Positions 201-52,704 of a stretch of 53,639 bases of DNA are shown here, one piece after another; position 1 is the stretch's first letter; each line of letters starts with the position of its first letter. The notes beneath the pieces are model-generated. The model worked only from the letters and a program-made list of their open reading frames with translations. It ran no database searches and was not told the DNA's origin. Made by a program: the position numbers and the translations under genes. Origin of the DNA: Octopus bimaculoides. Lineage: Eukaryota. The stretch lies in NCBI RefSeq assembly GCF_001194135.2, contig NC_068982.1:51272544-51326182 (forward strand), read 5' to 3'.

Positions 201-1712
201 ATTTATATCAGTGGCAACTCTGGCACTTGGGCTGCTTGGGCTTAGCCCAAGTATAAATTTTGTAAAGTGATCTTGTATTTGCAAGCTGATTTAATTTCTG
301 CCAACACTGACTTCAAGTATGTAATTATAGTCAATAACTCGGGCTCCTTTTATTGAGCTTCGTCACAGTATATTTTATTTTTTTGTTCAGCATTTGGCAG
401 TCGTCTTAAAGGTGCCCCGTGTCAAAAAATATCATTCATAGCTGACGTTCTCTCGACTTCGTTCACACATGCCTGACTCAAGCTCTGAAGTTACAGCCTG
501 AGTTGTTATCAATAATCATAAAAATTAAAAGTAATTCAAATTTAATGTTTTCTTGAAACAATAAATTTCTATAGAGATTAGGATTTAAATTCCCAATTTA
601 TGAAAAGTTTCCGTTCTACAATATTCTTAAAGGAATGTAAAAATTATCCAGCAACTCAGACTAATACGAACAAGCCTGGTAGGTGTAAAAGACTAACTGG
701 CATCTCTTGTCAAGAATACAGGTGACAGTCAGATCACTGCTGTTTGTTGTGCACCCTGCTATTGTTATTTGATTGCTGTTATTCTGTGCATCTGTGTGTA
801 AAGATCAGTTGTGTTTTGCAGGGTTGCTTTATTTTTACCCTTAACTTAGAAATGGAGAAAGACATAGTCCTAGATATACAAAAACTAGCCATTTGGGGCT
901 AGAAATATTGCAGAAAAACCTGAAATTCTTCAAGCAGGCACGTGTCTTATGCAAAATCTGTTATGAGCCCAAGTGACGATGATGATATTAATATCATTGT
1001 CATCAACTTTGTGTGCATTTTCTATGTTCACATGGGTATGACAATTCAACAGGATTCATTGTCTCATTTTTAGTATAGCTTCTGCGGCTGGATGCACTTC
1101 CTAATGTCAACCACTTCACACAAGGTTTTGGGTGCATTTTTTCATGGCACCAATATACATTTATATATCAGATACAAATTACAAACTATTATTAAGATCT
1201 TCTTTTTTTACCTTCTACCCTTGAATGTTTCTATTTCTTAACATTAGAAAATCTGGTATCATAAATCAATGAAAGAGCATTCAATCAAATTTCATATTAA
1301 AGATCTGATATTAACATATATTACATACGTTAGCAGCACTTACAAGCATGCTACTATATGAAATCTTGATTCTGTTTTGTAAATATAGTTATTTACATTT
1401 TAGCTTATGTTTAAAATGTAAATAGCAATATCTGCACTTATATATCATCCTACTAATTTTCAGTTGATTCATTTATTTTCATTATAAATTTTCTGTACAA
1501 AATGTTTAGTTGAATTATTATATTTAAATATTTTTCATATTCCTAAGTGTTGAACATTAATACTTTTATATATTTCTATATTTCACCTCTTTTCATATTA
1601 AATTGCAACTCATTTACAGTTAATGTTATGAAGATTTTAGACATTTGGTAACCCAAAATGAATCTTATTTTTCCGTTTATTAAATATGATTATAATTTCA
1701 TCTCTTAATCAG

Positions 1713-2548: not shown

Positions 2549-3794
2549 ATGTTTATTTTGGAGCATGTTAATATATGTGTGTGTACATTTCTTATTCATT
2601 TGTGTTTAAGACCTCTGGTAAAGTAACACAGGCAGACAGAATAAAATTATTGTCCTATTTCTGATTTAATACTAAGCCTTATAAGTAGTTTCCTCTATAT
2701 ATAATACACCAAATGCATCTGTATTTGCATAAGATCCTAAGTAACTTTGCTCGACTCTTAAAACTGGTCATGTGATATCTCATGCAAACTAAATGTATAA
2801 AATGAATTTTAGGACTTGAAGGATTTTGAACAAATATAGTTATTAGAATTGGGAAGCTAACATGGTTCTGTTCTAGCATAAATTGTTTAGAAAATACTTA
2901 ATACCAAAGTGATTTCGCAACAATGTAGAATCTGATACCAGTATAAGTGATACTTGCCTTGAGCTCTTTCAATCTGCAGTGTATTAGACAAGTTATTGTA
3001 AATACGTTTTGATATCATAATTAAATAACTCCCCCAAACACTATGTATTTTATATTATTTCACAAATAATTTTCCTCTTAATTTTTTGCATCTTTCTATA
3101 TATAACATAATTATTCATCTTCAAGTGTTATGTCCAATTACTTAACATTTGATTTAACTTCATCTCTATTTTTAGAATCTAGTATTCTTATGTAAATTTG
3201 CTTAAGATATTTTTTGTAGCCTAAAATATTCAATCTGACTTTCATCCAATATTTCAACAGTTCAAATGTTATGAATACTTGAGTTTCAGTTTATAATTTT
3301 CAGTTCCTTGAATTTGAATTTATTGCCTTCAGATATTAGCATTTATTCAGATAAAATGCATCTAGATTAAGAGAAATATACAGCATAAATTTAACTATAT
3401 GAACTTAAAAAATATATATATGGAGTCGATTAACAATTTATCTAAGAAGTTATTTTAAAATATACAAAAACAGTACATTTCTTTACCTAGTTCTATACAA
3501 TTTTCTTATAATCATGCATGCAAATATTATTCCATATCTAGCTAAGGAAAATAACTTTCTTCTGGTTATATTTTCTCTAAATGCGAGACAGTTGATTCAG
3601 TTTTAAAATCTCTTTTTGATAAAAGTAGATGATTTCAGTCTTGGAAATGAACAAATACAATTCATTTTTACTAGTTTATTCATTTCATACAACAATTTAT
3701 ATAAATTTTTATCTTAATAAATTCATTGGCATGCTATTATTTATATATAGTTACACTTTTGGATACATTCAATGTTGCATGTAATTTCTTATTA

Positions 3795-3865: not shown

Positions 3866-6479
3866 CAACTTTCATGGAATGAATAAACATTTTGTAAAAA
3901 TGTCAGCATGGAAGACAATCTGAAGATTGTCTTGCTTACTATCAGCACTGTTATGTCACTGAATATTGACTCTTTGGATGCACTTATGACTTAAACCTGG
4001 AAATAAAGTTCATTAAATCACTTCTAGGCCTTTCTTAAGTTGCAAATAACACCAGATTGTAAAGAAGACTGCAATTGAGAGGTGTGTATTGTCTAGCTTG
4101 TTACTGCAATTTCCTACTATATTCATGTACAGAGAAATTTAGTAGAGTGGGAGAAACTTCAGATTCTACTTACAAGTTTCATTTTTGAGCCGCTGATTTT
4201 CTCATATTTTCAACTTAAATGTTAAATATAAATCTTATTTCAATTTAATGACCATACAGCTATAGAATTGTATATTATCGATTCTCTAAAATTGTGTCTG
4301 ATTTAGAAATCCTTCGTGATTTTTAATAAAGATAATGGCAAAGGATCAGGTTTGACCTTTCCCTTATATCCGCAATGGCTACAGTAATTCCTCAATTATC
4401 GCGGGTGTTATGTTCCATCCCCACCCCTGAGATAGATGAAAATCCACGAAGTAAAAACAGTATGTTTTTGCGGGGGTTTTTTTTTTTGTAATTTGTGTAT
4501 ATATTTTTTTATTATAAAGGCAAAACAACACCACAGAGGAATTGATGTAAGCTTAAATAATAGACTACGATAGGTGAACCGTGATATGGCGAGAGATTAC
4601 TATATTTTATTTTTCTTTCTGCAAGTGTTACAGATGCTCGCAAGTAATTATAATCCTCTAATGAAGAGAGCTCCAAAAGTTTATTGTAGAAAAATCCGAT
4701 ACAAGCATCAGCATGGTTCAGTAATTTTTTTCTACTGCAGGTTTTCTCACTTGTTCTAAATGCCTATTTTTGTCTGCAGTTTACTTTTATTTTTTTCTGA
4801 CCTTTACTTACTGGGTCTTCACAGCTGTTAATTTTCTTAATTCACATAATTCTTTGTGTCTCCCTCAGTGCTAAAGAATGATAAATGTTCAGTTTGAAGC
4901 AAATGAAATATGTATTTTATCTATTATTTTCTTTTTGTAAAAGAATGGGAAATTTCAAGGAACATAACTCTAATTCGCCTTGAGAAGAGTTGTGTTTCTT
5001 GATTATAACTACAAGCTAATTTTTATGAAACTCCCAGGAAAATATTTTTATTGATTCAAGCGTTTGTTTTATGGTTATAAGAACAACTCTTATTGATTCT
5101 TTAATTATTAGCTTCATATTCTACTGTCACCAAATAAATAGATCATTTCTTTTTATGCAATTCTAGCTATAAGTGGTTCATTTATGATAAAAGCCAACAA
5201 TGACAATTTATATACTTCTGATAAAATTTCCAAATTTTATTATAAAGATTTAAAGACTGATTGCCTTCATTGATAAAATCAATATTTCATATTTAAACGT
5301 TAAAATTTTATAGATTTCTGTGTTTTCTGTTTGTATTTTTTATTACAATATTTTTTTTTATGTTCATTTAAAATAATATACATTTGCAACATTTGTTTAT
5401 CAAGTAATATTTAATTTTTGTTAAGGTAAACACCTGAAAAATTAATTTTGTTACACTTAAGAATATCCATCATTAATAGTAGAATAGGACTTAGTATTAT
5501 AAAATTTTATATTTGAGTTAATGTTGTGTATGTGTGTGTGTGTGTGTAATCTTCCATCCTTTATGAGCTGGACAGTCATGCTCTAGTGTCTGCTTTGGTA
5601 TGGTTTCTATTGCTGGATGCCCTTCTTAATGCTTACCACTTCACAGAGTATGCCAGGTGCTTTTCATAGCACCAGCACTAATGAGGTTGCCTTTCAATTC
5701 ACAAGGTGAAGATATATATCACACAAAGACACACATGTACATATACACATGTACTCATGTGTGTATGTGTATAAATATATATTTATATATGTATATGTGT
5801 GGTGTGTTTATATATGTATATTTCACTATGACCATCATATCAACATCTCATTAGACACTCTTCCATGCTTGTATGCAAAAAGTTTTCTGTGACCAGATGT
5901 TCTTCATATTTTCAACTTTTTTCACCTGTTTGCAAGCAAGGTAATATTTCCCCTAGTTAGTTTGATACAACATTGAAATGGTTGAGCATGTTTTCACAGC
6001 AGATTGCAAATTGACACTATTTGTATAACACAATAAGCAGTGTCAAGACGAGGTTGAACGAACACACGTGCATACATATATATGGGTTTCTATCTATTTC
6101 CAATTACCATATCAATTTATAAGGCTTTGGTCAACCCAAACTATAGAAAATGACACTTGCCCAAAGTACCATGCAGTGGGACTCTTGGCTAGGAACTTCT
6201 CTTGCAGTTGTCTCAATATGATGAGAGAATCAAAGAAATGCATCTTGTCTAAGTGGGTTGTGTTCCTAACCAAGTGTGCTAAGACTTACTTTCATAACTT
6301 AGTCCATCAGTTTCATACCTTCTGAGATGCTTCTTTCTAGAGCACCTCATTTACTCCTATAACAGTTGATGATTATAATACTGCTGTGCTAGTTATTAGG
6401 TATAACATTTCCCTGTATAATTTGGTTATCTGAGGAATTTCAACCATGTTTCGTGGTCTGCTACCACAACAGCTCCTTT

Positions 6480-7700
6480 ATAGGATCCAGTTAGCTCAAG
6501 ACATCATCAGGAGGAACCACGTCCGGTTTCGGCCCCTACTCCTCTATCGTTTTGATGTGGCGGGGCCCCCCCTTTCGGAATTGTCTTCAGCTCTGGTGTT
6601 GGGTGCATGTCTCCTTTCTTCCATTCCCTGGCCTCTTCGATGCAGCATCAACGAGTGTCAGCGTCCAACTGACTGTCTTGTCAAATTCCCCTTTTTATAC
6701 CTGCAGCTAGGCTCCAGCAGGCTGCCCCAGCAAGTTGTCACGTGACACTGTCTAAATTTNNNNNNNNNNCTGTCTTGTCAAATTCCCCTTTTTATACCTG
6801 CAGCTAGGCTCCAGCAGGCTGCCCCAGCAAGTTGTCACGTGACACTGTCTAAATTTCCCGCTGCTAGGGTCCAGTAGGCAGCCCCAGCAAGTTGTCACAT
6901 GACACTGTCTAAACTACCCGCTGCTAGGCTCCAGCAAGTAGCCCCATCAAGTTGTCACATGACACTGTCTAAACTTTAACTGACAATGGAGGGCGCATAA
7001 TCTTAGCCCACACATGCTCTAACTAAGACTGTCACCTGTCAATCAGCGAAGCCACTTCAGTGTCAGCCTGTCTCACCTAGNNNNNNNNNNNNNNNNNNNN
7101 NNNNNNNNNNNNNNNNNNNNNNNNNNNNNNNNNNNNNNNNNNNNNNNNNNNNNNNNNNNNNNNNNNNNNNNNNNNNNNNNNNNNNNNNNNNNNNNNNNNN
7201 NNNNNNNNNNNNNNNNNNNNNNNNNNNNNNNNNNNNNNNNNNNNNNNNNNNNNNNNNNNNNNNNNNNNNNNNNNNNNNNNNNNNNNNNNNNNNNNNNNNN
7301 NNNNNNNNNNNNNNNNNNNNNNNNNNNNNNNNNNNTTCTCTGCACTCTTCGATTAGTTTCTCGTATCTCTTCTCCTTTCGTTTCTCTGCATTTTCGATGT
7401 TTTCTTCCCATGGTACTGTCAGTTCTAGCAAGATTCCTATTCTCTGTTCTGTGTTCCATATGACTAAGTCTGGTCTTTTTGTTGTTTTTATTAGTGGAAA
7501 AATTGCTAGACTTCCCAAATCCGTGGCCAGCTCCCAGTATCCCTTCCATCTTTCGTCTATCTCGTATATTTTATTTGGAGGCCTGACCTTATGTCCTTTT
7601 CCCTCCTTCTGGAAGTATATTTTCCTGCGTTTTTCCACTTTGGGGTACTCTCCCCTATTGTATCCCTCGATCTTATCAGTCTTTCCCTCCCCTCACCTCC
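6480..7700 (-). mobile_element. 5'-truncated non-LTR retrotransposon with restriction-like endonuclease (HERO/NeSL/R2-type), C-terminus plus 3' UTR
   Basis: The ORF 7063-7638 contains RPDLVIW...ILLELTVPWEENIENAEKRKEKRYEKL, a PD-(D/E)xK REL endonuclease motif. ELTVPWEE is typical of HERO-clade elements from memory. Stop at 7063 is followed by a GC-richer 3' UTR. It is interrupted by an N gap and the boundaries are approximate. Confidence 0.8.
6797..6975. repeat. Three 60-bp tandem repeats in the LINE 3' UTR
   Basis: The period is exactly 60 (lines 6781, 6841 and 6901 align). Each unit contains tgtcac(g/a)tgaca. Confidence 0.9.
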
Positions 7701-9910: not shown

Positions 9911-11142
9911 GAAGACTATGTCAATTAAGTAACACCTGTATGGAGGAAGAATTACCCTACTAACATGCACAATTTGAATGACTTATATCAGTTGTTACAA
10001 AAGTTATTCCCAATTTTGCATTATTTTTTATCCAACTCTTGTGTAAATGTATAGTACCTTGATATCCTTATTTTCAAATATGTTAACTATTTGTTATTCC
10101 TAATCAATATACCATTCTTCTTAAATGCATTTCTACTACTTATCGAAATCATTTTGTTGGAATTCAATATCCATCAAGTAATTTCTTTCCAGTGTTCCCT
10201 CATTTGTCCTCATTTTCATCTGATGTGCGTGTCTAATAATCTGAATTAAGCTGTCATCACAATTGTCTTTCATATTCTCAAGAAATAATTTCATTACACT
10301 CTAGTAATTTAGAGAACTGCCTATCTCAGAGTAATATTTAATCTTTGTGAACATGAAAGAAATTATTAAAAATCAAAAATAAATTTCTTATACAACACCT
10401 TGTCATAAAATTTGATTTTAGTGATGCTATGCCAAACTTAGTCACTGCCTATGAATTGACAGAAACTTTGTTGGAATCTAACCTAATTTTAGAGATATGC
10501 TGAAACATTAAACACAGTTTAGTAGTAAAAGTATATTTACTACTGTTAAATGTATCCATTATTTTTTAAAACAATTCTTACTAGTTCCTTGTTTTATTAT
10601 TTCTACATCATTAGCACTTATACAGGATTAATCTACAATTAATCCTAATATTCTACTTGTAATGAGATCAATATTAATAGTATAAATTTGGAAATGATAG
10701 TAATTGAAGTATTTAAATATAATTCCATTTGATTTACTGTCCTTTTTCTTTGCCACTAAAGAACATTTAAATATGATTTAATAAAATAATAATTGTTCAA
10801 CTGTAGGTTCCTTGCTACATACAACAATATTAAAAAAATACATTATATTCATTTAATTAAGGCAGTGGATAGCAAAATTCTTAGAGCAGTATTTAGTTAC
10901 ATCACTTTACTACATTTTCAATTCAAAATTCCATCAAGGTCAACTTCATTTTTCATTCTTCTTGGATTCATAAAATAACGGCCATTCAGGCACTAGAATT
11001 GATTTAATCAACTGCATTCATACCCACCAAGTTTGTGGCCTTGTATTATACTAGAAATTAAAATTCATTTAATTAAAAGGAAGACATTTTATAACATTTG
11101 TAATATGGCTTGTAAGATTTTCTTTTCCATTCTTTATTGCAG

Positions 11143-12852: not shown

Positions 12853-13215
12853 TTAGTTTGGTTTACTTATTTGTTGTAAATGCTGCTTTTAGTCTGTCTT
12901 TTGCTTACATGTTCTGTATTGTTCTCTCTTTCATGATTCAACAAAGGTAACCAAAAATATTTTGCTTTTTGACATATATTTTGTATTAATTTATGAATGA
13001 TATTTCAGTCACTCATTTTCAATTGGTTAGAAGTATACAATAAACATTTCACAGTGGAATTGAACCAGTGAGTGTGTTAGATATTGAGACAGTATGACTC
13101 TCCCCAGACACAATAAAATTTCACAATTTATATCTATTTAAAGAAAAAAATAGACTTTCTATATTCATATTCAATATTACCCTTTATCAAAAATAATCTA
13201 CAATATTCCATTTAT

Positions 13216-13605
13216 AGGCGCAGGAGTGGCTGTGTGGTAAGTAGCTTGCTTACCAACCACATGGTTCCGGGTTCAGTCCCACTGCGTGACACTTTGGGCA
13301 AGTGTCTTCTACTATAGCCTCGGGCTGACCAATGCCTTGTGAGTGGATTTAGTAGACGGAAACTGAAAGAAGCCTGTCGTATATATGTATATATATATGT
13401 GTGTGTGTCTATGTTTGTCCCCCCAACATCGCTTGACAACCGATGCTGGTGTGTTTACGTCCCCGTAACTTAGCGGTTCGGCAAAAGAGACCGATAGAAT
13501 AAGTACTAGGCTTACAAAGAATAAGTCCTGGGGTCGATTTGCTCGACTAAAGGCGGTGCTCCAGCATGGCCGCAGTCAAATGACTGAAACAAGTAAAAAA
13601 GAGAG
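13216..13605 (+). mobile_element. tRNA-derived SINE, family A, with internal (TA)n/(TG)n
   Basis: Head aggcgcaggagtggctgtgtggtaag...gggttcagtccc (A/B-box-like) and A-rich tail. A second copy lies at 52283-52704 and a partial one near 6085-6190. Confidence 0.85.
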
Positions 13606-18275: not shown

Positions 18276-19640
18276 ATGGTTTCAAATTTTGGCACAAAGC
18301 CTGCAATTTCAAGGGGCAATGGTTAGTCAATTACATTGACTAGCATTTTATTTTATCAACCCCAAAAGGATGAACAGCAAAGTTGACCAAGCCAGAAGAA
18401 ATGCTGCTTAGCATTTTTCTGTTGTGCCTACAATTCTTCTAGCTCAACACCTTGATGATAAATGAGCATGACATTTCCTATTTATAAGAGAAAAGAAATG
18501 AAAAGTTATGACAACTTAAGTTGAAATATAAACAAAAAAAAAAAAAAACTTCAATGAATGAAAAAATATCCATTTAAATTACAATACTTAGTTTCCTTCA
18601 TAGTCTTTTGTGTACATAAAAAATAAAGTTATTTTTATTATCAACTCTATTATCTTTTATGTGCATGGAAAAATATATGTCTGAAAAGGACAACTGCCAA
18701 TAAATTTTCTGTATTTCTTAGGTCAGAGAAAAGACACTATCAAGATAATTTAGTGTACTTACAATGGTATCTGCAAAAGTTTTATATTTTGTGAAAAATA
18801 AGTGACTAGAAGAAATTCTGAAGTGAAGAATGAATTGCTGCATGTTGTGGTAAACACTCAGAAACATAAAAACAGGATCTGTATAGACAGCATGCAGAAT
18901 TACTCAAAGCCCCATTAATTGGACTAGAATTCTCTATACTTTGAGTAATAAGGAAGTATTTCCACAATAAAAGCTTTTAAATCCACAGTATATTACAAAT
19001 GCTTGATGTATTTGTTACTATCATTTTTAGTTCTTGCATCATGTTAAATTTATTTTACAAACCTTTTCACAAATAATTAATATCAAAACCCTATGAATTA
19101 GTTATCAGAATCTACTAATAATGATAATAATAATAAAGAGCAGGAGACAAGTTATAAATATAATCAAGTTTCATTCTTGTTTGCATAAAATATGCAAACA
19201 AGAATGAAACTTGATTACATTTATTATATCATAAACATTACCTTATTTGTATATATGAATATACATATATTGTCTACTCATCCAGTAAATAAAAAACTTT
19301 ATATAGCCTACAGACAAAAAAAAATTCATCCAAAACTCTGTTGTCACTTTATACTTATCCTTAATAAAAATGTTTCCATAATAGTAAAGTTTCAAGACTC
19401 CAGGTTCTGAAAAACCAAAACAGAAACCATTACCTTATCCATCTATTAGCCAGTTATTAAAAAGACCTTCAGAAAACTGCAATAAACAATGATTGATATT
19501 ATCTACGTATTCTATATTTATATTTAATTATACTGTATTATGATTATAGACATGTGCTGGAGTTAATAGTAACAAAAGTTTAAACATTTTTTTTTACAGT
19601 TTTTCATATATATGCTTGTGCTTCTTTTCATTCACTGCAG

Positions 19641-27700: not shown

Positions 27701-28989
27701 NNNNNNNNNNNNNNNNNNNNNNTATATATATATAATGTGCATGTGTGTGTGTGTATCTGCATATAAATGTATTTACATATGTGTATATACATGCATTCTT
27801 ATTTGGAAGTGTATTTATATGTGTGCATATAAGATGCATGGGTGTATGTACATATGTAAATATATGTTTATATTGCATCTACATATTCACATATGTATTC
27901 ATGTAGATAGATAAATGTGGGTATATGTGTTTATACATTTAAATATTCAAGAAATTGTATCTTTAAAAAAAAAATATATTAATTTATATAACCAAGACAG
28001 AATCAGAAAATTTTTTCTGCTTATGTCTATTTGAACTGTTTTTGCAATTGAACTAGTGTTGGGTCGTTACTGGTATTTTCTTATTCACTGCTATTAATGT
28101 TCTAAGTATAATAAATTTGACTAAAATATTAATGATATTAGTTATTAAATTTTATTTATAAATAAAAATTATAGTTATAATGAGAACTTGATTATAATTT
28201 GAATTTCAGTATATGTTTAGCATTTCAACTAAATATGAATATCATTCATTATAAATCACAGCATCAGCAACATATTAATTCAGTGTCCCTACATATCTAG
28301 ATTTGAGTAACTGTCTAAAACTATTCCCACCACTCATCCATTTATTTTCTCAGAACATTTCATTAGAAATATGTTAGTAGCTTTGAAGCAGATATTCAGA
28401 ACATATAGATTTGATATTTTAGCACCAATTAATACACATGTTAGAAATATCTCCAGATTTTCAAGATTACAGAATACAAACTATATAAAAATTTAGTTTA
28501 GCAGATAAATTTTAGCTAATTTGTTTTAAGTAAGTTAAATCAGAGTTAGACAAGAACAATCAGTGAGGAAATGTCCATTAAGAACAGTATAATTTAACCA
28601 AAACTTAACATTGCAGAGTTTTTTTACTCTCACTACTAAACAATAAAGGATTTGTTTTGTGCATCATGCATTCTTCTCGATTCATTTGGAATGTGTGTAT
28701 GTGTGTGTGTGTGTGTGTGCGCGTGTGCGTGTGTGTGTGTGTGAATATATTTGTATGTATGTATACATACACACACACTGCTGTGGAGCTAACCATGGCT
28801 ACAACTGTTCTATACCTATCCAAAGTTGTCTCATGTTACATTACACACATTTAACAATAAGCAAACATAAATGTATATATATTTACTTGTCCACAAACTG
28901 ATGCAGAGATACAGACACATAAATCTATATACACACACATAGACATACTCACATATAGGTGAACATACACACACATTCATAAGCACCCG

Positions 28990-33895: not shown

Positions 33896-34009
33896 GCGAC
33901 GAAGTGCCTAACCCCGAATGGGAAGATCTGCAAACAGATCTCTGGCTTGTTTTGGAGAATTTGTTGCAATTGCCTCCTCCAGAGTCAGATCCATATTCTT
34001 TGCTAAAAA

Positions 34010-34460
34010 TCATGTAAAAAAAATCATCAAAAACAATCACAGAAATGAAAGAAAGGAATCCAAAATTTCAGGATTGCAGGTCCGGATTCGGCCTGGAATG
34101 TTTTTAATTTACTTGCAGAGTTGACCTTTAAATTATAAAAATTGTTATCATACACAAAAATTTGTTACAAAAAGTCATGTAAAAAAAATCATCAAAAACA
34201 ATCACAGTAATGAAAGAAAGGAATCCAAAATTTCAGGATTGCAGGTCCGGATTCGGCCTGGAATGTTTTTAATTTACTTGCAGAGTTGACCTTTAAATTA
34301 TAAAAATTGTTATCATACACAAAAATTTGTTACAAAAAGTCATGTAAAAAAATCTCTGAAAACAATCACAGTAATGAAAACTTGGGAATCCAAAATTTCG
34401 GGATTGTGGGTCCAGATTTGGTCCGGAATATTTTTAATTTACTCACAGAGTCAGCCTGAT
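34010..34460. repeat. 165-bp tandem triplication (third unit partial and diverged)
   Basis: tcatgtaaaaaa starts at 34010, 34175 and 34340. Units 1 and 2 are nearly identical. Confidence 0.9.
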
Positions 34461-38278: not shown

Positions 38279-38304
<26 letters not shown>

Positions 38305-38309
<5 letters not shown>

Positions 38310-38505
38310 TTGAAAAAACGAGTAAAGATGGCTTTTGGGGGGTATAATTTTTATTTTAATGATAATGTTTCCAGTTACACTAATGAGTAACTGGGAAAAT
38401 TATCATTAAAATGTTTCCAGTTACTTTAATGAGTAACTGGGAAAATTATCATTAAGATTAAAATTATCCCCTCAAAAGCCATCTCTACTCATTTTTCAAA
38501 TATAT
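38305..38505. mobile_element. MITE with about 45-bp TIRs and two internal tandem hairpins
   Basis: atatttgaaaaaacgagtaaagatggcttttgggggg matches the reverse complement of the right end, and TA flanks both sides. The internal tttccagttac...gagtaactgggaaa occurs twice. Confidence 0.8.
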
Positions 38506-38679
38506 CATACTGTGCCAAGAACCATTTTTTATTATTCTACTCTGTGTTTGTGTGTGTGTGTGTGTGTTTGTGTTGTGGCTTGCGAAAAAAAAAAAGAAGA
38601 AGAAAATGCCATAGGGCTCTGTGTACTGAATTACCCGGGGGCTGGAAATGCTATTAAGACGGCTCTACATGAAACCATT

Positions 38680-39031
38680 GTGGGGGCGCAATGGCTCAGT
38701 GGTTAGGGCAGCGGACTCGCGGTTTCGATTCCCAGACCGGGCGTTGTGAGTGTTTATTGAGCGAAAAGGTCTAAAAGCTCCACGAGGCTCCGGCAGGGGA
38801 TGGTGGTGAACCCTGCTGTACTCTTTCTCTCACTCTTGTTTCTGTTGTGCCTGTAATTCAAAGGGCCAGCCTTTTCACACTGTGCCACGCTGAATATACC
38901 CGAGGACTACGTTAAGGGTACACGTGTCTGTGGAGTGCTCAGCCACTTGCACGTTAATTTCACGAGCAGGCTGTTCCGTTGATCGGATCAACTGGAACCC
39001 TCGACGTCGTAAGCGACGGAGTGCCAACAAC
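38680..39031 (+). mobile_element. tRNA-derived SINE, family B, with 13-bp TSD
   Basis: Head gtgggggcgcaatggctcagtggttaggg, (CAA)n tail, and perfect TSD acatgaaaccatt at 38667-38679 and 39032-39044. Confidence 0.92.
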
Positions 39032-40099
39032 ACATGAAACCATTATCATTAAAAACAGAATTTTTATAGCAGGGATAATTCAGCCTCTCACTTTAAAATG
39101 TTATACAGAGCAACCAAAATCTGTCCAGCAAGTAACCAAAGTAATGTGTATGTTGTCTACATTCTCTGCAATGTACTCTCATAGGGTAATGAGACTTAAG
39201 CTACATATTGTCGAGTCAAACAACACCAGCATGGGGATTGCTTACAAAATGTAAACATCACGATACGAGTAAAAGAGAAACCAACTTTGAATATTCAAGG
39301 GAGACAATCTTTATATTTACCTCCCCTCAATTGATTTTCTTCAAAATTTTAGTGTAAGTAAACAGCTTTACATAGATAGGCAATTAGCGGTTTATAATTG
39401 TTTTGTTAAGATTTTTCTTATTAAAGTAACTGAGATTGAATTTTGAAATTTAACCGAGATGTAGAGAGCCAGAAAACCTCCATTTTCTTGAAAATGAATT
39501 AAAATTACAATTTTTAAAATTTTACTTTTAATTCCTGACAAAACAAAAACTTTGCCTGAAGCAAAAGTTAGATAGGTTTACAAATTTCTTTCTGGCATNN
39601 NNNNNNNNNNNNNNNNNNNNNNNNNNNNNNNNNNNNNNNNNNNNNNNNNNNNNNNNNNNNNNNNNNNNNNNNNNNNNNNNNNNNNNNNNNNNNNNNNNNN
39701 NNNNNNNNNNNNNNNNNNNNNNNNNNNNNNNNNNNNNNNNNNNNNNNNNNNNNNNNNNNNNNNNNNNNNNNNNNNNNNNNNNNNNNNNNNNNNNNNNNNN
39801 NNNNNNNNNNNNNNNNNNNNNNNNNNNNNNNNNNNNNNNNNNNNNNNNNNNNNNNNNNNNNNNNNNNNNNNNNNNNNNNNNNNNNNNNNNNNNNNNNNNN
39901 NNNNNNNNNNNNNNNNNNNNNNNNNNNNNNNNNNNNNNNNNNNNNNNNNNNNNNNNNNNNNNNNNNNNNNNNNNNNNNNNNNNNNNNNNNNNNNNNNNNN
40001 NNNNNNNNNNNNNNNNNNNNNNNNNNNNNNNNNNNNNNNNNNNNNNNNNNNNNNNNNNNNNNNNNNNNNNNNNNNNNNNNNNNNNNNNNNNNNNNNNNN

Positions 40100-40424
40100 G
40101 AGTTTGATTTGAAGAAGATTTGGCTGCTATTATGCTTGAATTACACTATTCTACTTGTTTCAGTTGATTGAGTAATAGCTAATAAGGGGAAAAAGACATC
40201 AAAATACTTGAATATTGCCTGCACTTGTTATTGGAGCTGGCAGAATTATTAATGCACCTCCACCAAGTGCTTCATTTCCTAGAAATAGCAGCCAAATCTT
40301 CTTCAAATCAAACTCAGAATTATTAATGCACCTCCACCAAGTGCATTAATAATTCTGCCAGCTCCAATAACAAGTGCAGGCAATATTCAAGTATTTTGAT
40401 GGCCTTTTTTTCCCTTATCAGCTA
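40100..40424. repeat. Interleaved inverted and direct duplications
   Basis: IR pair 40100-40131 / 40284-40315, IR pair 40176-40257 / 40341-40424, and direct pair 40241-40270 / 40315-40344. Confidence 0.85.
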
Positions 40425-41107
40425 CAAAATTTTTTATCTGTTCTATATCACAATACATACAAGTATACGAAGTTTGAAAGTGTTTCAGTACCAAAAACAC
40501 TACATAAAACATAAATGAAAAATGTTGCCTGTCAAACCAAAAAGATCCGAGAGGAGCAAGAGAGAGAGAAGAGCGAGAGAGAGAGAGGAGCGAAAGAGAG
40601 AGAGGAACGAGAGAGAGAGAGAGAGAGGAGCAAGAGAGAGAAAGGTGGACGACGGCATGGGCTNNNNNNNNNNNNNNNNNNNNNNNNNNNNNNNNNNNNN
40701 NNNNNNNNNNNNNNNNNNNNNNNNNNNNNNNNNNNNNNNNNNNNNNNNNNNNNNNNNNNNNNNNNNNNNNNNNNNNNNNNNNNNNNNNNNNNNNNNNNNN
40801 NNNNNNNNNNNNNNNNNNNNNNNNNNNNNNNNNNNNNNNNNNNNNNNNNNNNNNNNNNNNNNNNNNNNNNNNNNNNNNNNNNNNNNNNNNNNNNNNNNNN
40901 NNNNNNNNNNNNNNNNNNNNNNNNNNNNNNNNNNNNNNNNNNNNNNNNNNNNNNNNNNNNNNNNNNNNNNNNNNNNNNNNNNNNNNNNNNNNNNNNNNNN
41001 NNNNNNNNNNNNNNNNNNNNNNNNNNNNNNNNNNNNNNNNNNNNNNNNNNNNNNNNNNNNNNNNNNNNNNNNNNNNNNNNNNNNNNNNNNNNNNNNNNNN
41101 NNNNNNA

Positions 41108-41645
41108 AATTGATTAACGCCCCACCCATGCCGGGTTCCTTAACTACCCTGTCCATGATGTAGCGTATTAGGTGGAGGTTGTCATGGATGCTTCTGCCCA
41201 GCACGCCGCACGTCTGCGCCGTGTCGACCAGTTTGCCGATGACAAGCGCCAACCTCTCAGCTAGCACCTTGGCCAAAATTTTCAAATCTGCGTTAAGCAG
41301 AGTGATGGGCCTGAAGTTATCTAAGACATCCCCCTTGTTTGGGTCCTTCTTTAGCAGTGTTACCGCACCTCGGCTCACAAAACTGGGTATGCTCCCGTTT
41401 TGCTGCCAGTTGTAGTACACACTTGCCAAGACGTCCCCAAACAAGTCCGGCATATGACAATAAAATTCGTAGGGAAGACCATCCAAGCCAGGCGACTTGT
41501 CTCTTGCACAGCCCGCCATCGCGTCCCGTACGTCCGCAGCTGTGATGGGTCTTTCGCAACACTGTGCCTCGCCCGTCGACAGCCGTAGCAGGGCGTGCAG
41601 GTAGGCACTGAAGTCCACCTGACGTTCGTCCCCACCATCGGCCAC
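41108..41645 (-). mobile_element. Tx1/L1-clade LINE reverse transcriptase fragment
   Basis: KSPGLDGLPYEFY, NFRPITLLNADLKILAKVLAERL and GRSIHDNLHLIR are N-terminal RT motifs of L1/Tx1 ORF2. The frame is open until the N gap. Confidence 0.92.
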
Positions 41646-42480: not shown

Positions 42481-44768
42481 GAGCTAGACAAATAACCACC
42501 AACATCATTGACGGCGTCTCAGCAACCAAAAGGTGAAGTGCTGCCTATTTCCTTTGTAAATAAATATTGTTGTGTTGATATTTCAGAATTTGCGTTCCGT
42601 TGTTTCTTCTAGAAATTTAATGTACGGAAGCGGTGTACACCTAATGGTGTATAACCACTTTCCTACAATTGATGACCCCGACGCAAGAACAAACGCAGCC
42701 CGGAGAATCCCTACAATTGGTGGCCCCGACTCAAGAACAACCACGGCCGAGGATTCTGATCTACCGACCAATAATACCACCAGAGAATGCACACACTCAC
42801 TCGCATCAGCTTATTCCACAGCTGCAGGACTTTCTCTTGGTCATCACACGGCACTTCCTTACAATTGATGACCCCGAATAAAGAACAACTGCAGCCGAAA
42901 ATCTGAACTGCGACCAATAATACTACAATTGGTACCCCGAGCTAAAAGATCTACAGACCTCGTTTCAACAGCCATTGAATTCGTATGTTTCGCGATGTTC
43001 AACTTCAGGATTGCCTCTACATCCTCATCCATCACAAGTGAAANNNNNNNNNNNNNNNNNNNNNNNNNNNNNNNNNNNNNNNNNNNNNNNNNNNNNNNNN
43101 NNNNNNNNNNNNNNNNNNNNNNNNNNNNNNNNNNNNNNNNNNNNNNNNNNNNNNNNNNNNNNNNNNNNNNNNNNNNNNNNNNNNNNNNNNNNNNNNNNNN
43201 NNNNNNNNNNNNNNNNNNNNNNNNNNNNNNNNNNNNNNNNNNNNNNNNNNNNNNNNNNNNNNNNNNNNNNNNNNNNNNNNNNNNNNNNNNNNNNNNNNNN
43301 NNNNNNNNNNNNNNNNNNNNNNNNNNNNNNNNNNNNNNNNNNNNNNNNNNNNNNNNNNNNNNNNNNNNNNNNNNNNNNNNNNNNNNNNNNNNNNNNNNNN
43401 NNNNNNNNNNNNNNNNNNNNNNNNNNNNNNNNNNNNNNNNNNNNNNNNNNNNNNNNNNNNNNNNNNAACTTTTTGAGCAATTTCCTACATGTTTCACGAG
43501 ACGTCAATTCATTCTTACACAGCGTCCTCTACTTGCTGAAAATAGCAGTAAAATGCACAGTTACATTTCAGTGGGTACATAACATTTGTTGATGCTTACT
43601 TGTTCCCAGTTCAGCTTATTTCGTCACCTCTCCGTTTCTCTCGGCCGGAGAATGGAAGAGTTACTGGCTTATCTTCATTTGCACGGGATCTTTTAGTCAT
43701 TTTCGCTCGCAGCTCCGAATTCATGACAGCATTTTCCAGCAATGCCACCAACGGTACCTCTCAAATAGATGCCCTGTCAAATTTGTCTCTCCTGATACGC
43801 ACCAACAGCCACCATCCCGCTTCTAATGGGATGGTTGAGCGTTTTCATAGGCAATTTAAGGCTGCCTTACACGCCTCGCCCAACCCGCAGTCTTGGGTTG
43901 AATTTCTTCAAGGTCGACGCTAATGGTTGTACAGAGATTGTGTCTGCCGACCATCTGAAGAAGCGTACCTTGGCAAACCCTCAACTTTCGTGTACGACAT
44001 GCCCGTTTTTCAAACACCACACACCACTGTCAACATCATTACCACCACACACATACAGAACACAGCTACAGCCAGTTTACAGCGACGACATCAACAACCA
44101 CTACGAACTACAAGCATCGCCCCCGACGTCGCCAGCAGCAATACGACTCTACGTACTACCAACGTCATCAACATGACTTCTACACATACACAAGCAACCA
44201 ACATCAACAAGCGCGGTTTTATCTCGACCCTGTTAGAGTGGATGTTTCCACTCACGATCAACAGACCAGAACTAACCAGCCAGAATATTCAGTACCAGGT
44301 AACACAGGTCCCAGCATCGACGCTCAACTACAGCTCTGCTCCTTGACCGCAACTTCCTGCATATGAACATTCTAAANNNNNNNNNNNNNNNNNNNNNNNN
44401 NNNNNNNNNNNNNNNNNNNNNNNNNNNNNNNNNNNNNNNNNNNNNNNNNNNNNNNNNNNNNNNNNNNNNNNNNNNNNNNNNNNNNNNNNNNNNNNNNNNN
44501 NNNNNNNNNNNNNNNNNNNNNNNNNNNNNNNNNNNNNNNNNNNNNNNNNNNNNNNNNNNNNNNNNNNNNNNNNNNNNNNNNNNNNNNNNNNNNNNNNNNN
44601 NNNNNNNNNNNNNNNNNNNNNNNNNNNNNNNNNNNNNNNNNNNNNNNNNNNNNNNNNNNNNNNNNNNNNNNNNNNNNNNNNNNNNNNNNNNGAGCTAGAC
44701 AAATAACCACCAACATCATTGATGGCGTCTCAGCAACCAAATGGGCGAAGTGCTGCCTATTTCCTCTG
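42481..44768 (+). mobile_element. Internally deleted Ty3/Gypsy LTR retrotransposon relic
   Basis: A direct repeat of about 76 bp (42481-42556 / 44692-44768) is a likely LTR segment. There are tRNA-Trp-type PBS motifs from 42670, an RNase H-like RQFILTQRPL at about 43500 and the integrase motif HHPASNGMVERFHRQFKAAL at 43800-43875. Confidence 0.8.
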
Positions 44769-44810
44769 AAAAATGTTGACCATCAAACCAAAAAGATTCA
44801 AAAGGATTAT

Positions 44811-45039
44811 ACATAGATAGGCAATTATCGGTTTATAATTATTTTGTTAAGATTTTTCTTATTAAAGTAACTGAGATTGAATTTTGAAATTTAACCGAGA
44901 TATAGAGAGCCAGAAAACCTCCATTTTCTTGAAAATGAATTAAAATTAGAATTTTAAAAATTTTACTTTTAATTCCTGACAAAACAAAAACTTTGCCTGA
45001 AGCAAAAGTTAGATAGGTTTACAAATTTCTTTCTGGCAT
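44811..45039 (+). repeat. 229-bp direct duplicate of 39370-39598
   Basis: acatagataggcaatta...tttctttctggcat is present twice with a handful of substitutions. The left copy runs into an N gap. Confidence 0.9.
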
Positions 45040-48000: not shown

Positions 48001-48881
48001 TATGGTATGGGATGGTTCAAGGTTATACTCAAGGACATTTGCCCAAGTTGCCACAAAGTAGAATTGAACCTGAGATCTCATCATTGCAAAGTAAACTTTT
48101 TAACCACTTGGCAATGCTTGCATCCATATATATACAGGGCATGAGAAGTATTTGAATAAATATTTTGTAATTTAAGTAAACAACTTCAATCTAGCAAAAA
48201 ACCAAATGTATTTTGATATAAATTTGTGCACATGTTCTTAATAAGCTTGCATACATAAGATTTATAAGATAGGTCTACACTGTAATGTGGTCGACACTTA
48301 GAAGGGCATCCAGCTGTAAAAACCTTGTCAAAACTGACCACGCCTGTGCTTGTGCCACATAAAAAGCACTAGGTACACTCTGCTGAGTGCTTGGTGTTAT
48401 TCAGGCATAATCTGGATAATGGAAGCCTTCAGTAAAGCTATGATAGTGAGGATGTCAATTAGTCTCCCTTTCAACAACACTACAGAATTATGGAGGCTAC
48501 AAGTTTGGTGTTACATCATCAAGATTATCTGACATCCATTCTTGGGTTATGTGGGTTGAGAAGGTGCTGAGTCTTATTGACATCCTAATAGTCTTCCATT
48601 GTGTACTTTATCCATTCAGAGCTTAACTGTCTCCAGCATCTCAGTATATCCAGTGACATTAATTCTAAGATGTTGTGGAAAGATGTGAGTTTGCATGTCA
48701 AGACTTTCATTACTCACCATTCCTAAAACCAATCACAGTTGTTAGAAACTTAATGTGCATCACTCTAGGTGACAACAGAATGATCTGCATATAACCATCT
48801 ATCATTTCTCCTATTAGATTTTTGGTTTTGGTTAAAGTTTGGGTGGAATTCTGCTTTAAGCACCCCATATAAACCCTCATA

Positions 48882-49261
48882 GTGGAGGCGCAATGGCCCA
48901 GTGGTTAGGACAGTGGACTCGCGGTCAAAGGATCACGGTTTCGATTCCCAGACCAGGTGTTGTGAGTGTTTATTGAGCGAAAACACCTAAAGCTCCATGA
49001 GGCTCTGGCAGGGGATGATGGCGAACCCTGCTGTACTCTTTTACCACAACTTTCTCTTACTTCCTGTTTCTGTTGTGCCTGTAATTCAAAGGGTCAGCCT
49101 TGTCACGCTGAATATCCCCGAGAGCTACGTTAAGGGTACACGTGTCTGTGGAGTGCTCAGCCACTTGCACGTTAATTTCACGAGCAGGCTGTTCCGTTGA
49201 TCGGATCAACTGGAACCCTCGACGTCATAGGCGACGGGAGTGCCAAAAACAACAACAAAAC
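48882..49261 (+). mobile_element. tRNA-derived SINE, family B, with 11-bp TSD
   Basis: TSD aaaccctcata at 48871-48881 and 49262-49272. Same family as 38680-39031. Confidence 0.92.
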
Positions 49262-49492
49262 AAACCCTCATAACTTTTTTTTTATGTTTTGGAATTTTTC
49301 AGAAAATTTTTGCAAATCTGTGTTCTACACACAGGAATTTGTGTGATTAAGCAAAACGCAGAAAAAAGTTTTGGTGCATGATCTAAGGCTATTTAGCTGT
49401 TATTTTTAGCACATGTCACAACCATCTCATACCCTTCTCACTACTAATTTTCTGAAAATTCCAAAAAAGAAAAAGGGCTATGAGGGGTTATT

Positions 49493-49879
49493 GTTGTTGT
49501 TGGCACTCCGTCGCTTACGACGTCGAGGGTTCCAGTTGATCCGATCAACGGAACAACCTGCTTGTGAAATTAATGTGCAAGTGGCTGAGCACTCCACAGA
49601 CACTAGTACCCTTAATGTAGTTCTCGGGGATATACAGCGTGACACAGTGTGACAAGGCTGGCCCTTTGAAATACAGGCACAACAGAAACAGGAAGTAAGA
49701 GTGAGAGAAAGTTGTGGTGAAAGAGTACAACAGGGTTCGCCACCATCCCCTGCCGGAGCCTCGTGGAGCCTTAGGTGTTTTCGCTCAATAAACACTCACA
49801 ACGCCCGGTCTGGGAATCGAAACCGTGATCCTATGACCGCGAGTCCGTTGCCCTAACCACTGGGCCATTGCGCCTCCAC
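49493..49879 (-). mobile_element. tRNA-derived SINE, family B, with 13-bp TSD (1 mismatch)
   Basis: TSD atgagggg(t/c)tatt at 49480-49492 and 49880-49892. Full head and (CAA)n tail on the minus strand. Confidence 0.92.
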
Positions 49880-49959
49880 ATGAGGGGCTATTTGACATAC
49901 TTAAACAAGTATTCAGCCAAGTTTTTTCACCAGAGAAGAACCAAAGTATACCATGTTTG

Positions 49960-50410
49960 TAAGGTTTTTAACCATGCTAAGTAACTGGTTGGCAGAGAGC
50001 AAGCAGCTTTCCTGTGTCTTTGCAGATATAAATTAGTCTCTCCTCAGTAAATAAAACTTGTATGACATATCTTTGTGCATCACATTTCTGATAATCAGCT
50101 CCAACACCTGAAGTTCTTTGACAATGACTGTTATTGACTTTCTAGGGATCATCATCAATAATGTTTTGAAGCAGTTGGATGAATTCAAGTGTCCTTGTAG
50201 TGTCTAAACATTTAGAATGTTCTTGTTCTCTTTCATACAGTTGAAACATTCACACCAGAGGCTTCCAGTTTCATATGAACTTTGTGTACTAAAGATCTTA
50301 CTACATTTAGAAAGTTGGCCATTTCTAACTTGTTCTGTTCTGCACATATGGCAAAAATGATTTCATGTCTTATCATTTCTTGTGTTACCATTTCATCTGC
50401 TATGGAGGAT
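49960..50410 (-). mobile_element. maT/DD37D-like Tc1-mariner transposase N-terminal relic
   Basis: Minus strand gives MVTQEMIRHEIIFAICAEQNKLEMANFLNVVRSLVHKV and TRTLEFIQLLQNIIDDDP*KSITVIVKELQV...DMSYKFYLL, an HTH-type transposase N-terminus with stops. Subfamily assignment is from memory. Confidence 0.6.
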
Positions 50411-50513: not shown

Positions 50514-50655
50514 TGTACATTATTTATATTCGACGGATATTTGTCCTCATCTTGTTTGTTGTTAACACATTTCGACTGATATACCCTCCAGCCTTCTTCA
50601 GGTGTCTTGAGGAAATTTCAAACCTGGATTCTCATTCCTAAGATATTTTTTGATA

Positions 50656-50698
<43 letters not shown>

Positions 50699-50866
50699 TA
50701 TTATTATTATTATTGTTATTGTTATTATTCAGGTCACTGCTTGGAATCAAACTCGGAATCTTGGGGTTAGTAGCCCATGCTCTCAGCCACTACGCTGTAT
50801 GCCCATGGGCATATGATGTAGTGGTTAAGATGAGGACAAATATCCGTCGAATGTAAATAATGTACA
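50514..50866 (-). mobile_element. Composite short element: tRNA-like head, (AAT)n and Penelope-type hammerhead-like tail, with inverted partial second copy
   Basis: On the minus strand: head 50804-50730 with A/B-box-like motifs, (AAT)n 50729-50657, then gacac-CTGAAGA-a-ggctg...cagtc-GAAA-t-gtgtt at 50607-50564. A 40-bp inverted repeat lies at 50514-50553 / 50827-50866. Confidence 0.65.
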
Positions 50867-51811: not shown

Positions 51812-52282
51812 TATATATATAGATATATATATATATATATGTGTGTGTGTGTACATGTAATATGCATATATCTATATGCATACATTCATACATATATATA
51901 TATATGCATACACACACACACACACACAACATGCATGTATACATATGTGCTATAATTTATATTTGCAGCAAGCAACTCTAAATGTTCGCAAATGATAAGT
52001 AGAAAACATGTAAGTATACATGTCAAGTTCAACATCTAAATTTGTATCAATTTACAAATACATTTCATAATTAGCATTTGAAATGGGAGCAACAAAGAAT
52101 ACATGTAATATCAATGATTGCTGGTTACAACGTCCATTTTTAATGATTACTAAATATGAATTGTAATTATAAATTTTCTATCTAAAATGAGAACTATTTT
52201 AAGTGCAAAATAATAAATTTTAAGCTACAGCAAATTTTTGCAGAAGTTATTAGTGGGAAAAATAAGATAGAATTATCATCTA

Positions 52283-52436
52283 TAGGAGCAGGAGTGGTAA
52301 AAAACTTGCTTCTCAACCACATAGTTCTGGGTTCAGTCCCACTGCATGGCACCTTGGGCAAGTGTCTTCTACTATAGCCTCAGCCAACCAAAGCCTTGTG
52401 AGTGGATTTGGTAGACAGAAACTGAAAGAAGCCCAT

Positions 52437-52493
<57 letters not shown>

Positions 52494-52704
52494 TTGTGTG
52501 TCTGTGGTTGTCCCCCCACCATTGCTTGACAACTGATGTTAGTGTGTTTATGTCCTCGTAATGTAACAGTTTGGCATAAGAGACCAATAGAATAAGTACT
52601 AGGCTTACAAAGAATAAGTCCTTGGGTCAATTCATTCGATTAAAGGCAGTGCTCCAGCATGGCCACAGTCAAATGACTGAAACAAGTAAAAGAATAAAAG
52701 AATA
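52283..52704 (+). mobile_element. tRNA-derived SINE, family A
   Basis: Colinear with 13216-13605, including the central (TA)n. Has a small deletion in the head. Confidence 0.85.

Follow-up and report, generated by a model that had tools for sequence, protein, structure and literature searches.

Mirror-placed copies of one SINE family in the two arms of a small inverted-repeat element of Octopus bimaculoides

The 53,639-nt stretch of Octopus bimaculoides DNA analysed here (from contig NC_068982.1; hereafter the window, in whose numbering all positions are given and which holds 50.8 kb of sequence other than N) contains a near-palindrome of 1049 bp at 48856–49904, as found by direct reading of 48500–50300, with a repeat finder and with blastn. 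Each half of this palindrome carries a full-length copy of the same short interspersed nuclear element (SINE), the two lying tail to tail and each having its own target-site duplication (TSD), and both insertions occurred at the matching nucleotide of the same target sequence (n = 2 only). By our own estimate, which takes as its basis one other copy of this SINE per 50.8 kb of non-N sequence, a second insertion at the mirror site, in mirror orientation and within a few nt, is expected by chance at ~1e-4 or less; the mirror placement is not chance. Two independent insertions into an older inverted repeat, mediated by a long interspersed nuclear element (LINE), are favoured with moderate confidence from comparison of the sequences, and the simplest view of the 1049-bp palindrome takes it for a dead nested insertion and not a mobile unit.

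The order of elements in the composite is TTAA, 22 nt, a SINE on the plus strand, ~226 nt of AT-rich DNA, a SINE on the minus strand, 21 nt and TTAA. A third copy of the same SINE, elsewhere in the window, served as the reference for its ends. The features are as follows.

48834–48855, no strand: left flank, with weak inverse pairing to 49905–49925 (score 7, p ~0.026; 15/22 identity)
48856–48859, no strand: left TTAA, by direct reading
48860–48881, plus strand: outer part of the left arm, GCACCCCATATAAACCCTCATA, ending in the 5' copy (11 nt) of the left SINE TSD
48882–49261, plus strand: left SINE, full length, 380 bp, with boundaries set by the third copy
49262–49272, plus strand: 3' copy of the left TSD, AAACCCTCATA, an 11/11 match to 48871–48881
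49273–49479, no strand: interior of the host inverted-repeat element, from the repeat finder, blastn and the hairpin fold
49273–49308 and 49446–49479: inner arm segments, mutually inverted, from the repeat finder
49480–49487, minus strand: right TSD, tail-side copy (ATGAGGGG on the plus strand; CCCCTCAT in SINE orientation)
49488–49879, minus strand: right SINE, full length, 392 bp, from blastn and alignment
49880–49900, minus strand: outer part of the right arm, in which 49880–49887 (8 nt) form the right TSD's head-side copy
49901–49904, no strand: right TTAA, by direct reading
49905–49925, no strand: right flank, partner of 48834–48855, from blastn and anchored extension
38668–39044, plus strand: third SINE copy (38680–39032) with its 12-bp TSD CATGAAACCATT, the reference for ends and the outgroup

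Much of the arrangement proposed in the initial annotation is borne out by these features, namely two SINEs tail to tail with separate TSDs (48882–49261 on the plus strand and 49488–49879 on the minus strand), with heads 22 and 21 nt inside the TTAA sites and each directly 3' of CCCTCAT(A). The same is true of the inverted inner ends of the spacer, which measures ~210 bp according to the repeat finder and blastn, and of the indel differences between the two SINEs, which amount to 6, 10 and 1 bp in the alignment, in addition to 24 substitutions. Nine N runs interrupt the window, a draft sequence with many microsatellites and ~35% G+C among its non-N bases; the N run nearest to the composite ends at 44691, and no gap lies within 4 kb.

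The repeated unit is a SINE by its behaviour, because it occurs as dispersed copies with variable TSDs and ends in a simple-repeat tail, whilst its origin from a tRNA is putative. Exactly three copies were found in the window by blastn with the SINE, and they have three different TSDs (AAACCCTCATA, CCCCTCAT and CATGAAACCATT). The left and right copies are 93% identical to each other and 84–86% identical to the third (blastn and alignment), and all three have (CAA)n/(AAC)n-type tails of 7–17 nt in the alignment, the A-rich (CAA)n tail of the left SINE lying at 49245–49261. The third copy, with a perfect 12-bp TSD CATGAAACCATT at 38668–38679 and 39033–39044, defines the start of the SINE as GTGGRGGCGC and its end as ...GGAGTGCC, after which the (AAC)n-type tail begins. 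It has no related inverted repeat around it, and it also lacks CCCTCAT, which excludes this motif as a part of the SINE. In the head of the left SINE, TGGCCCAGTGG at 48894–48904 resembles box A and fits the consensus of that box, TRGCNNAGTGG, and GGTTTCGATTCC at 48937–48948 resembles box B and is near its consensus, GGTTCGANNCC. No tRNA was called in the SINE head by either ARAGORN or Rfam, even at E ≤ 1, and a tRNA call for the head was therefore dropped.

The left TSD, AAACCCTCATA, is perfect (11/11) at 48871–48881 and 49262–49272, whilst the right TSD, ATGAGGGG on the plus strand, at 49480–49487 and 49880–49887, is perfect over 8 bp, or 10 bp long if one mismatch is accepted. Of the TSD lengths of 11 and 13 bp given in the initial annotation, the former therefore stands and the latter does not, as the earlier 13-mer mixes two registers of GGGCTATGAGGGGCTAT. 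Written in SINE orientation with slashes at the boundaries, the left junctions read ...CATAT/AAACCCTCATA/GTGG...tail/AAACCCTCATA/ACTTTTTTTTT and the right junctions ...CAAAT/AGCCCCTCAT/GTGG...tail/(AA)CCCCTCAT/AGCCCTTTTTC. The head junctions are 1 nt apart in the alignment (CTCATA/GTGG on the left against CTCAT/GTGG on the right). If the right TSD is read as 10 nt, both arms have their first-strand nick at the homologous AT^A, and the second nick is offset by 1 nt between them. Each pair of TSD copies also matches its own arm: both copies on the left contain AAACCC, and both on the right contain CCCC.

A comparison of divergence bears on whether these were one event or two. The SINE bodies differ by substitution at 24 of 359 aligned positions (93.3% identity), compared with 12 of 63 for the arms (81% identity; Fisher p = 0.003 against the SINE bodies) and 7 of 21 for the outer 22 nt of the arms (67%; Fisher p = 0.0006). 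Since the arms are more diverged than the SINEs within them, the inverted repeat is, judged by this divergence, older than the SINEs, and because it predates them a simple inverted duplication of a SINE-bearing arm is excluded. With the third copy as outgroup, 11 private changes were counted on the left and 11 on the right, many of them CpG to TpG or CpA, and the three-way comparison revealed no site at which both copies had lost a CpG kept by the third copy, so that there is no sign of a common history after insertion. The proposal of two separate insertion events, already made in the initial annotation, is thus upheld by the TSD proper to each arm, the 1-nt offset of the head junctions, the greater divergence of the arms and the lack of shared CpG decay. 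Twin priming was considered and rejected, as there are two full-length units, with their own TSDs and ~210 bp of non-SINE DNA between them. Misassembly is unlikely from the sequence, because the copies have diverged, all four junctions agree with one another and the closest N run ends as far away as 44691.

When each SINE and one copy of its TSD were deleted, an empty host element of 258 bp was reconstructed. It is AT-rich, has inverted ends of 58/55 nt with an anchored extension score of 27, which was reached by 2 of 2000 random window pairs, is predicted to fold as a DNA hairpin (z = −5.4) and has stop codons in all six frames. Being short and non-coding, with inverted ends and a hairpin, the element looks like a MITE (miniature inverted-repeat transposable element), and we infer that it is the relic of a DNA transposon. 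The initial annotation had the inverted repeat bounded by TTAA, and TTAA is indeed present on both sides, but the similarity does not stop cleanly there, apparently extending ~10–22 nt beyond. By blastn it runs on to 48846/49914, and anchored extension adds ~22 more nt at 68–71% identity, a result that was reached by 2.6% of random window pairs. The TTAA may therefore be interior to the inverted repeat instead of being the TSD of the host element; because TTAA is a palindrome, its presence on both sides is indistinguishable from that of a conserved internal tetranucleotide. A TSD of the PIF/Harbinger or hAT type was rejected, as no matching direct repeats were found at the ends.

Nor do the ends of the host element resemble those of piggyBac elements. 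The termini of piggyBac elements are 12–19 bp long, begin with C[C/A/T][C/A/T] and end in G, the terminal G being needed for excision (PMC5381638). The arms read TTAA/GCACCCC... and, as reverse complement, TTAA/GTATGTC..., with G as the first base in both; this is not the C of the published termini (PMC5381638), and ends of the piggyBac type are absent. Only 4 of the first 10 nt agree between the arms, and 14 of the outer 22 nt are identical. A sensitive blastn search with the empty element returned no second copy in the window, only low-complexity noise, and a 27-base pattern kept in both arms had no match in metagenome or prokaryote genome contigs, which do not include the host genome. A 19-base arm pattern had five unrelated matches in viral contigs and is too short to discriminate. 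The MITE family postulated in the initial annotation accordingly lacks members beyond this single copy in the window and in these metagenome and prokaryote contigs.

In the scheme favoured here, a small non-coding inverted-repeat element would have been present first (~258 bp if ended by the TTAAs), with arms that had already diverged, and two RNA copies of one octopus SINE family would then have inserted in separate events, one per arm, each by LINE-driven target-primed reverse transcription (TPRT). In opposite orientation, the two arms share one local sequence, ...AT^A(A/G)(A/C)CCCTCAT(A)^A..., with a T-run after it, and the same favoured nick-and-anneal site would have been used twice; because the arms are inverted, this would leave the SINEs tail to tail at mirror positions, with their own TSDs. 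The local sequence or structure of the arm probably attracted both insertions, and a partner LINE probably carried them out.

Several observations weigh against this scheme. There are only two events, at one locus, and only T^A ... CAT(N)^A of their nick context recurs in the third copy. The flanks of the third copy, and of the copies that are read through in O. bimaculoides proteins, are unrelated. The CCCTCAT sites at 10197 and 35252 are unoccupied, so that preference for a simple motif would seem too weak to account for a double insertion. No partner LINE with a shared 3' end was found in the window by blastn with the SINE, and the left and right copies, being equally privately diverged (11 and 11) and mutually closest, would fit a coupled origin. 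The unrelated flanks of the third and protein-embedded copies, together with the empty sites at 10197 and 35252, also contradict the earlier suggestion that the arm is a strong, sequence-specific target, and the composite's SINE is, on this sequence evidence, not strictly site-specific. The local preference might lie in an extended endonuclease motif, although the context common to the three events comprises only T^A and CAT(N)^A, or in DNA structure, as CCCTCATA is predicted to form an 8-bp helix between internal loops with both nicks at its edges. A further option, which we consider improbable, is RNA homing between the arms.

Under RNA homing, the second copy would descend from the first yet have a TSD of its own. 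The RNA polymerase III (Pol III) transcript of the first copy would read past the tail and stop at a T-run 13 nt on, and the ~13 nt arm tag at the end of the RNA would anneal at a nick in the opposite arm and prime reverse transcription at the mirror position. A T9 run at 49275–49283 does start 13 nt after the left tail, as does an A5 run at 49470–49474 (T5 on the minus strand, 49474–49470) after the right tail, and from their sequence both would act as Pol III terminators at that distance downstream of each SINE. The read-through AAACCCUCAUAAC would pair with ...CTATGAGGGG of the opposite arm, and the 3' end of the latter sequence lies exactly at the start of the right SINE tail. Homing would also fit the close mutual similarity of the two copies (93%, against 84–86% to the third) and their equal private divergence, would account for a double insertion by a SINE without general site specificity, and has a parallel in non-long-terminal-repeat (non-LTR) elements such as R2, whose target-specific integration can be strengthened by target sequence transcribed along with them (PMC4494074). 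However, it would leave no direct trace, the annealed segment being replaced by target sequence; the tails differ, with AAAAACAACAACAAAAC on the left SINE and AACAACAACAACAATAA on the right; transcription of the copies and tolerance of 3' extensions by the partner reverse transcriptase must both be assumed; and, were the host-element family large, the RNA should home elsewhere and not to its own partner arm. A homing SINE, in which an arm tag that can pair with the other arm and with kindred arms elsewhere steers the next insertion to the mirror nucleotide and a SINE that is otherwise non-specific chooses its target by RNA guidance, is doubtful. Copying of one insertion into the other arm at the DNA level, whether by gene conversion or loop repair in a two-arm hairpin or by an inverted duplication that created the inverted ends, would make the mirror geometry automatic. 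It shares with homing the equal private divergence and a pair more alike than either is to the third copy, and an inverted duplication would allow the inverted similarity to pass the TTAA, as it may. Yet divergence is significantly greater in the arms than in the SINEs, where an inverted duplication should leave it uniform, and there is no shared CpG decay. Donor-type junctions would be predicted as well, whereas each junction agrees with its recipient arm, so that a 1-nt indel at the head junction and an A/C change in the tail-side TSD would be needed, both restoring that agreement, and we regard this route as quite unlikely.

The remaining explanations concern the palindrome as a whole. It might be one copy of a mobile family with long, SINE-derived inverted ends, moved by a TTAA-specific transposase, as the initial annotation had envisaged; a TTAA stands on both sides, a SINE-bearing MITE is known (MER6, PMC6887750) and piggyBac elements are reported to be active in Octopus vulgaris (PMC13282606). 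Against this, the window holds no second copy, the terminal 22 nt are only 64–67% identical between the arms and start with G and not with the C of piggyBac (PMC5381638), the internal TSDs mean that the SINEs arrived at the present locus or its direct ancestor, and an arm divergence of 7% would make any movement old. Nothing at present supports movement of the composite by DNA transposition, and a mobile family is very improbable. A coincidence of two unrelated insertions, or a false join in the short-read scaffold, might be expected more readily in a gapped draft with nine N runs from octopus genomes, which are very SINE-rich (PMC8967140, PMC13282606), but the chance expectation is ~1e-4 or less per first insertion, the 7% divergence and the indels are not those of a collapsed or duplicated read path, TSD pairs and arm pairs agree across all four junctions, and the nearest gap is more than 4 kb away; this last explanation is scarcely credible. 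The reading that continues to be preferred is that of two separate insertions into an older inverted repeat.

Copies of the SINE were also found beyond the window. A 105-aa open reading frame (ORF) that crosses the right SINE matched representative proteins with SINE-derived segments at 78–92% identity, two of these being the Octopus bimaculoides UniRef entries A0A0L8HYS4 and A0A0L8FM37; taken with the draft character of the window, these matches point to O. bimaculoides or a near relation as the host. The SINE copies that are read through in proteins P0125, P0128, P0139 and P0002 are followed by unrelated sequence after the tail. Translated pieces of the composite's SINE occur in the O. bimaculoides protein models P0124, P0126, P0128 and P0139, and the SINE-bearing models of this species include a LIM-homeobox (Lmx1-like) protein with a SINE-derived C-terminus, a CHGN-like glycosyltransferase in which the N-terminus comes from the SINE, and a laminin-N-domain protein. 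Such segments are either exonised SINEs or errors in the gene models. P0127, another candidate SINE-bearing protein, was rejected as a bacterial false positive.

In the other protein search, the 105-aa ORF gave two weak matches, one of which led to a 3.2-kb Logan contig (L001, SRR11869394) of a relative. This contig contains two inverted copies of the SINE central domain 2.1 kb apart, at 459–616 (plus strand) and 2757–2916 (minus strand), which are 72–78% identical to the SINE of the window over ~160 nt. Such similarity points to a core that is conserved as a SINE domain beyond O. bimaculoides. An alignment-based scan of metagenome contigs for the SINE gave no confirmed match, the SINE DNA patterns found nothing in viral contigs or prokaryote genome contigs, and a literature search with the sequences as text strings returned nothing. 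SINEs are the main component of the repeat complement in both Octopus bimaculoides and O. vulgaris (PMC8967140) and account for 11.6% of the O. vulgaris genome, in which L1-Tx1 LINEs and piggyBac are among the recently active families (PMC13282606).

The window is rich in other repeats. Downstream of the composite by 600 bp, at 50514–50866, there is a second structure in which a SINE lies in an inverted repeat. Here, a 40–46-nt inverted repeat (TGTACATTATTTAyATTCGACGGATATTTGTCCTCATCTT, 1 mismatch) surrounds a minus-strand unit whose head is tRNA-like and which has an (AAT)n microsatellite and terminates in an (AAC)n-like stretch, and the CCTCAT of the repeat directly adjoins the unit. A different and more abundant SINE family, with the head GGCGCAGGAGTGGCTGTGTGGTAAG..., is present at 13189–13598, 52258–52691 and 6072–6183; it has an internal (TA)n/(TG)n microsatellite, and its two long copies are 78% identical.

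Two direct repeats of 230 bp each (39369–39598 and 44810–45039) are 97.8% identical and lie 5.4 kb apart, and the gapped region between them contains a reverse-transcriptase ORF at 40500–41645 (minus strand) and an integrase-like ORF at 43600–43923 (plus strand). The repeats could be the long terminal repeats of a retrotransposon or a scaffolding duplication around N runs. A protein search with the reverse-transcriptase ORF matched only environmental assemblies of other organisms, and one with the second transposon ORF matched 1-kb Logan contigs. Self-comparison revealed more perfect or near-perfect palindromes at 19154–19224, 38304–38505, 40176–40424 and 27740–27895 (72–93% identity), some of which are probably microsatellite-based. 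There are also tandem duplications at 34005–34451, with a unit of ~165 bp and 92% identity, and at 6673–6976, where a ~100-bp repeat adjoins a gap.

The significance of the locus depends on whether it recurs. To our knowledge, strong local targeting is known for a few LINEs and hardly at all for SINEs. If the mirror double insertion recurs genome-wide, an abundant and supposedly non-specific SINE would have a strong local targeting rule, for which an endonuclease motif, DNA structure or pairing between read-through RNA and target are the candidates, and there would be a route by which small inverted repeats become ~1-kb palindromes folding into ~370 bp of double-stranded RNA (dsRNA). Were homing true, the conversion of inverted repeats into long SINE palindromes would be stepwise and a systematic source of dsRNA hairpins. 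A single occurrence would make the locus a tidy but ordinary case of nested insertion. Should the SINE pair at 48882–49879 be transcribed, a nearly continuous dsRNA hairpin of ~370 bp is predicted, at −773 kcal/mol as opposed to −292 for shuffles. The octopus genome is known for heavy RNA editing, and in a cephalopod the modelled dsRNA could plausibly be acted on by A-to-I editing enzymes.

Among known systems, the nearest analogue is that of Tx1L and Tx1D, in which a Tx1-clade non-LTR element inserts into Tx1D, a non-autonomous piggyBac transposon of Xenopus laevis (PMC4494074, citing Christensen et al. 2000). In both cases, a TPRT retroelement at a defined sequence in a non-autonomous inverted-repeat element gives rise to composites. 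The guest here, however, is a SINE and not a LINE, there are two events at one locus with both arms symmetric, most copies of the SINE lie elsewhere, and the host lacks ends of the piggyBac type and is a single copy in the sequences searched. MER6/MER6A, a Tc1/mariner-derived MITE with the body and tail of a V-SINE (PMC6887750), likewise has SINE sequence within an element with inverted ends and is a precedent for the spread of a SINE by DNA transposition. It differs in being a proven multi-copy family with one headless SINE fragment between its inverted ends, whereas the present locus is a single one, with two complete SINEs, each with its own TSDs, one per arm. Ordinary nested octopus SINEs share with the composite a full-length SINE with an A/B-box-like head, a simple-repeat tail and an 8–13-bp TSD inside another repeat, but random nesting does not predict insertion at mirror-image homologous nucleotides. 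In primates, inverted Alu pairs, opposite SINEs separated by some hundreds of bp, are able to fold into a long dsRNA hairpin; the potential for dsRNA is the same here, although Alu pairs arise at arbitrary positions and not at mirror sites. The locus is best regarded as an uncommon form of nested insertion with a hint of SINE targeting, and not as a new kind of element.

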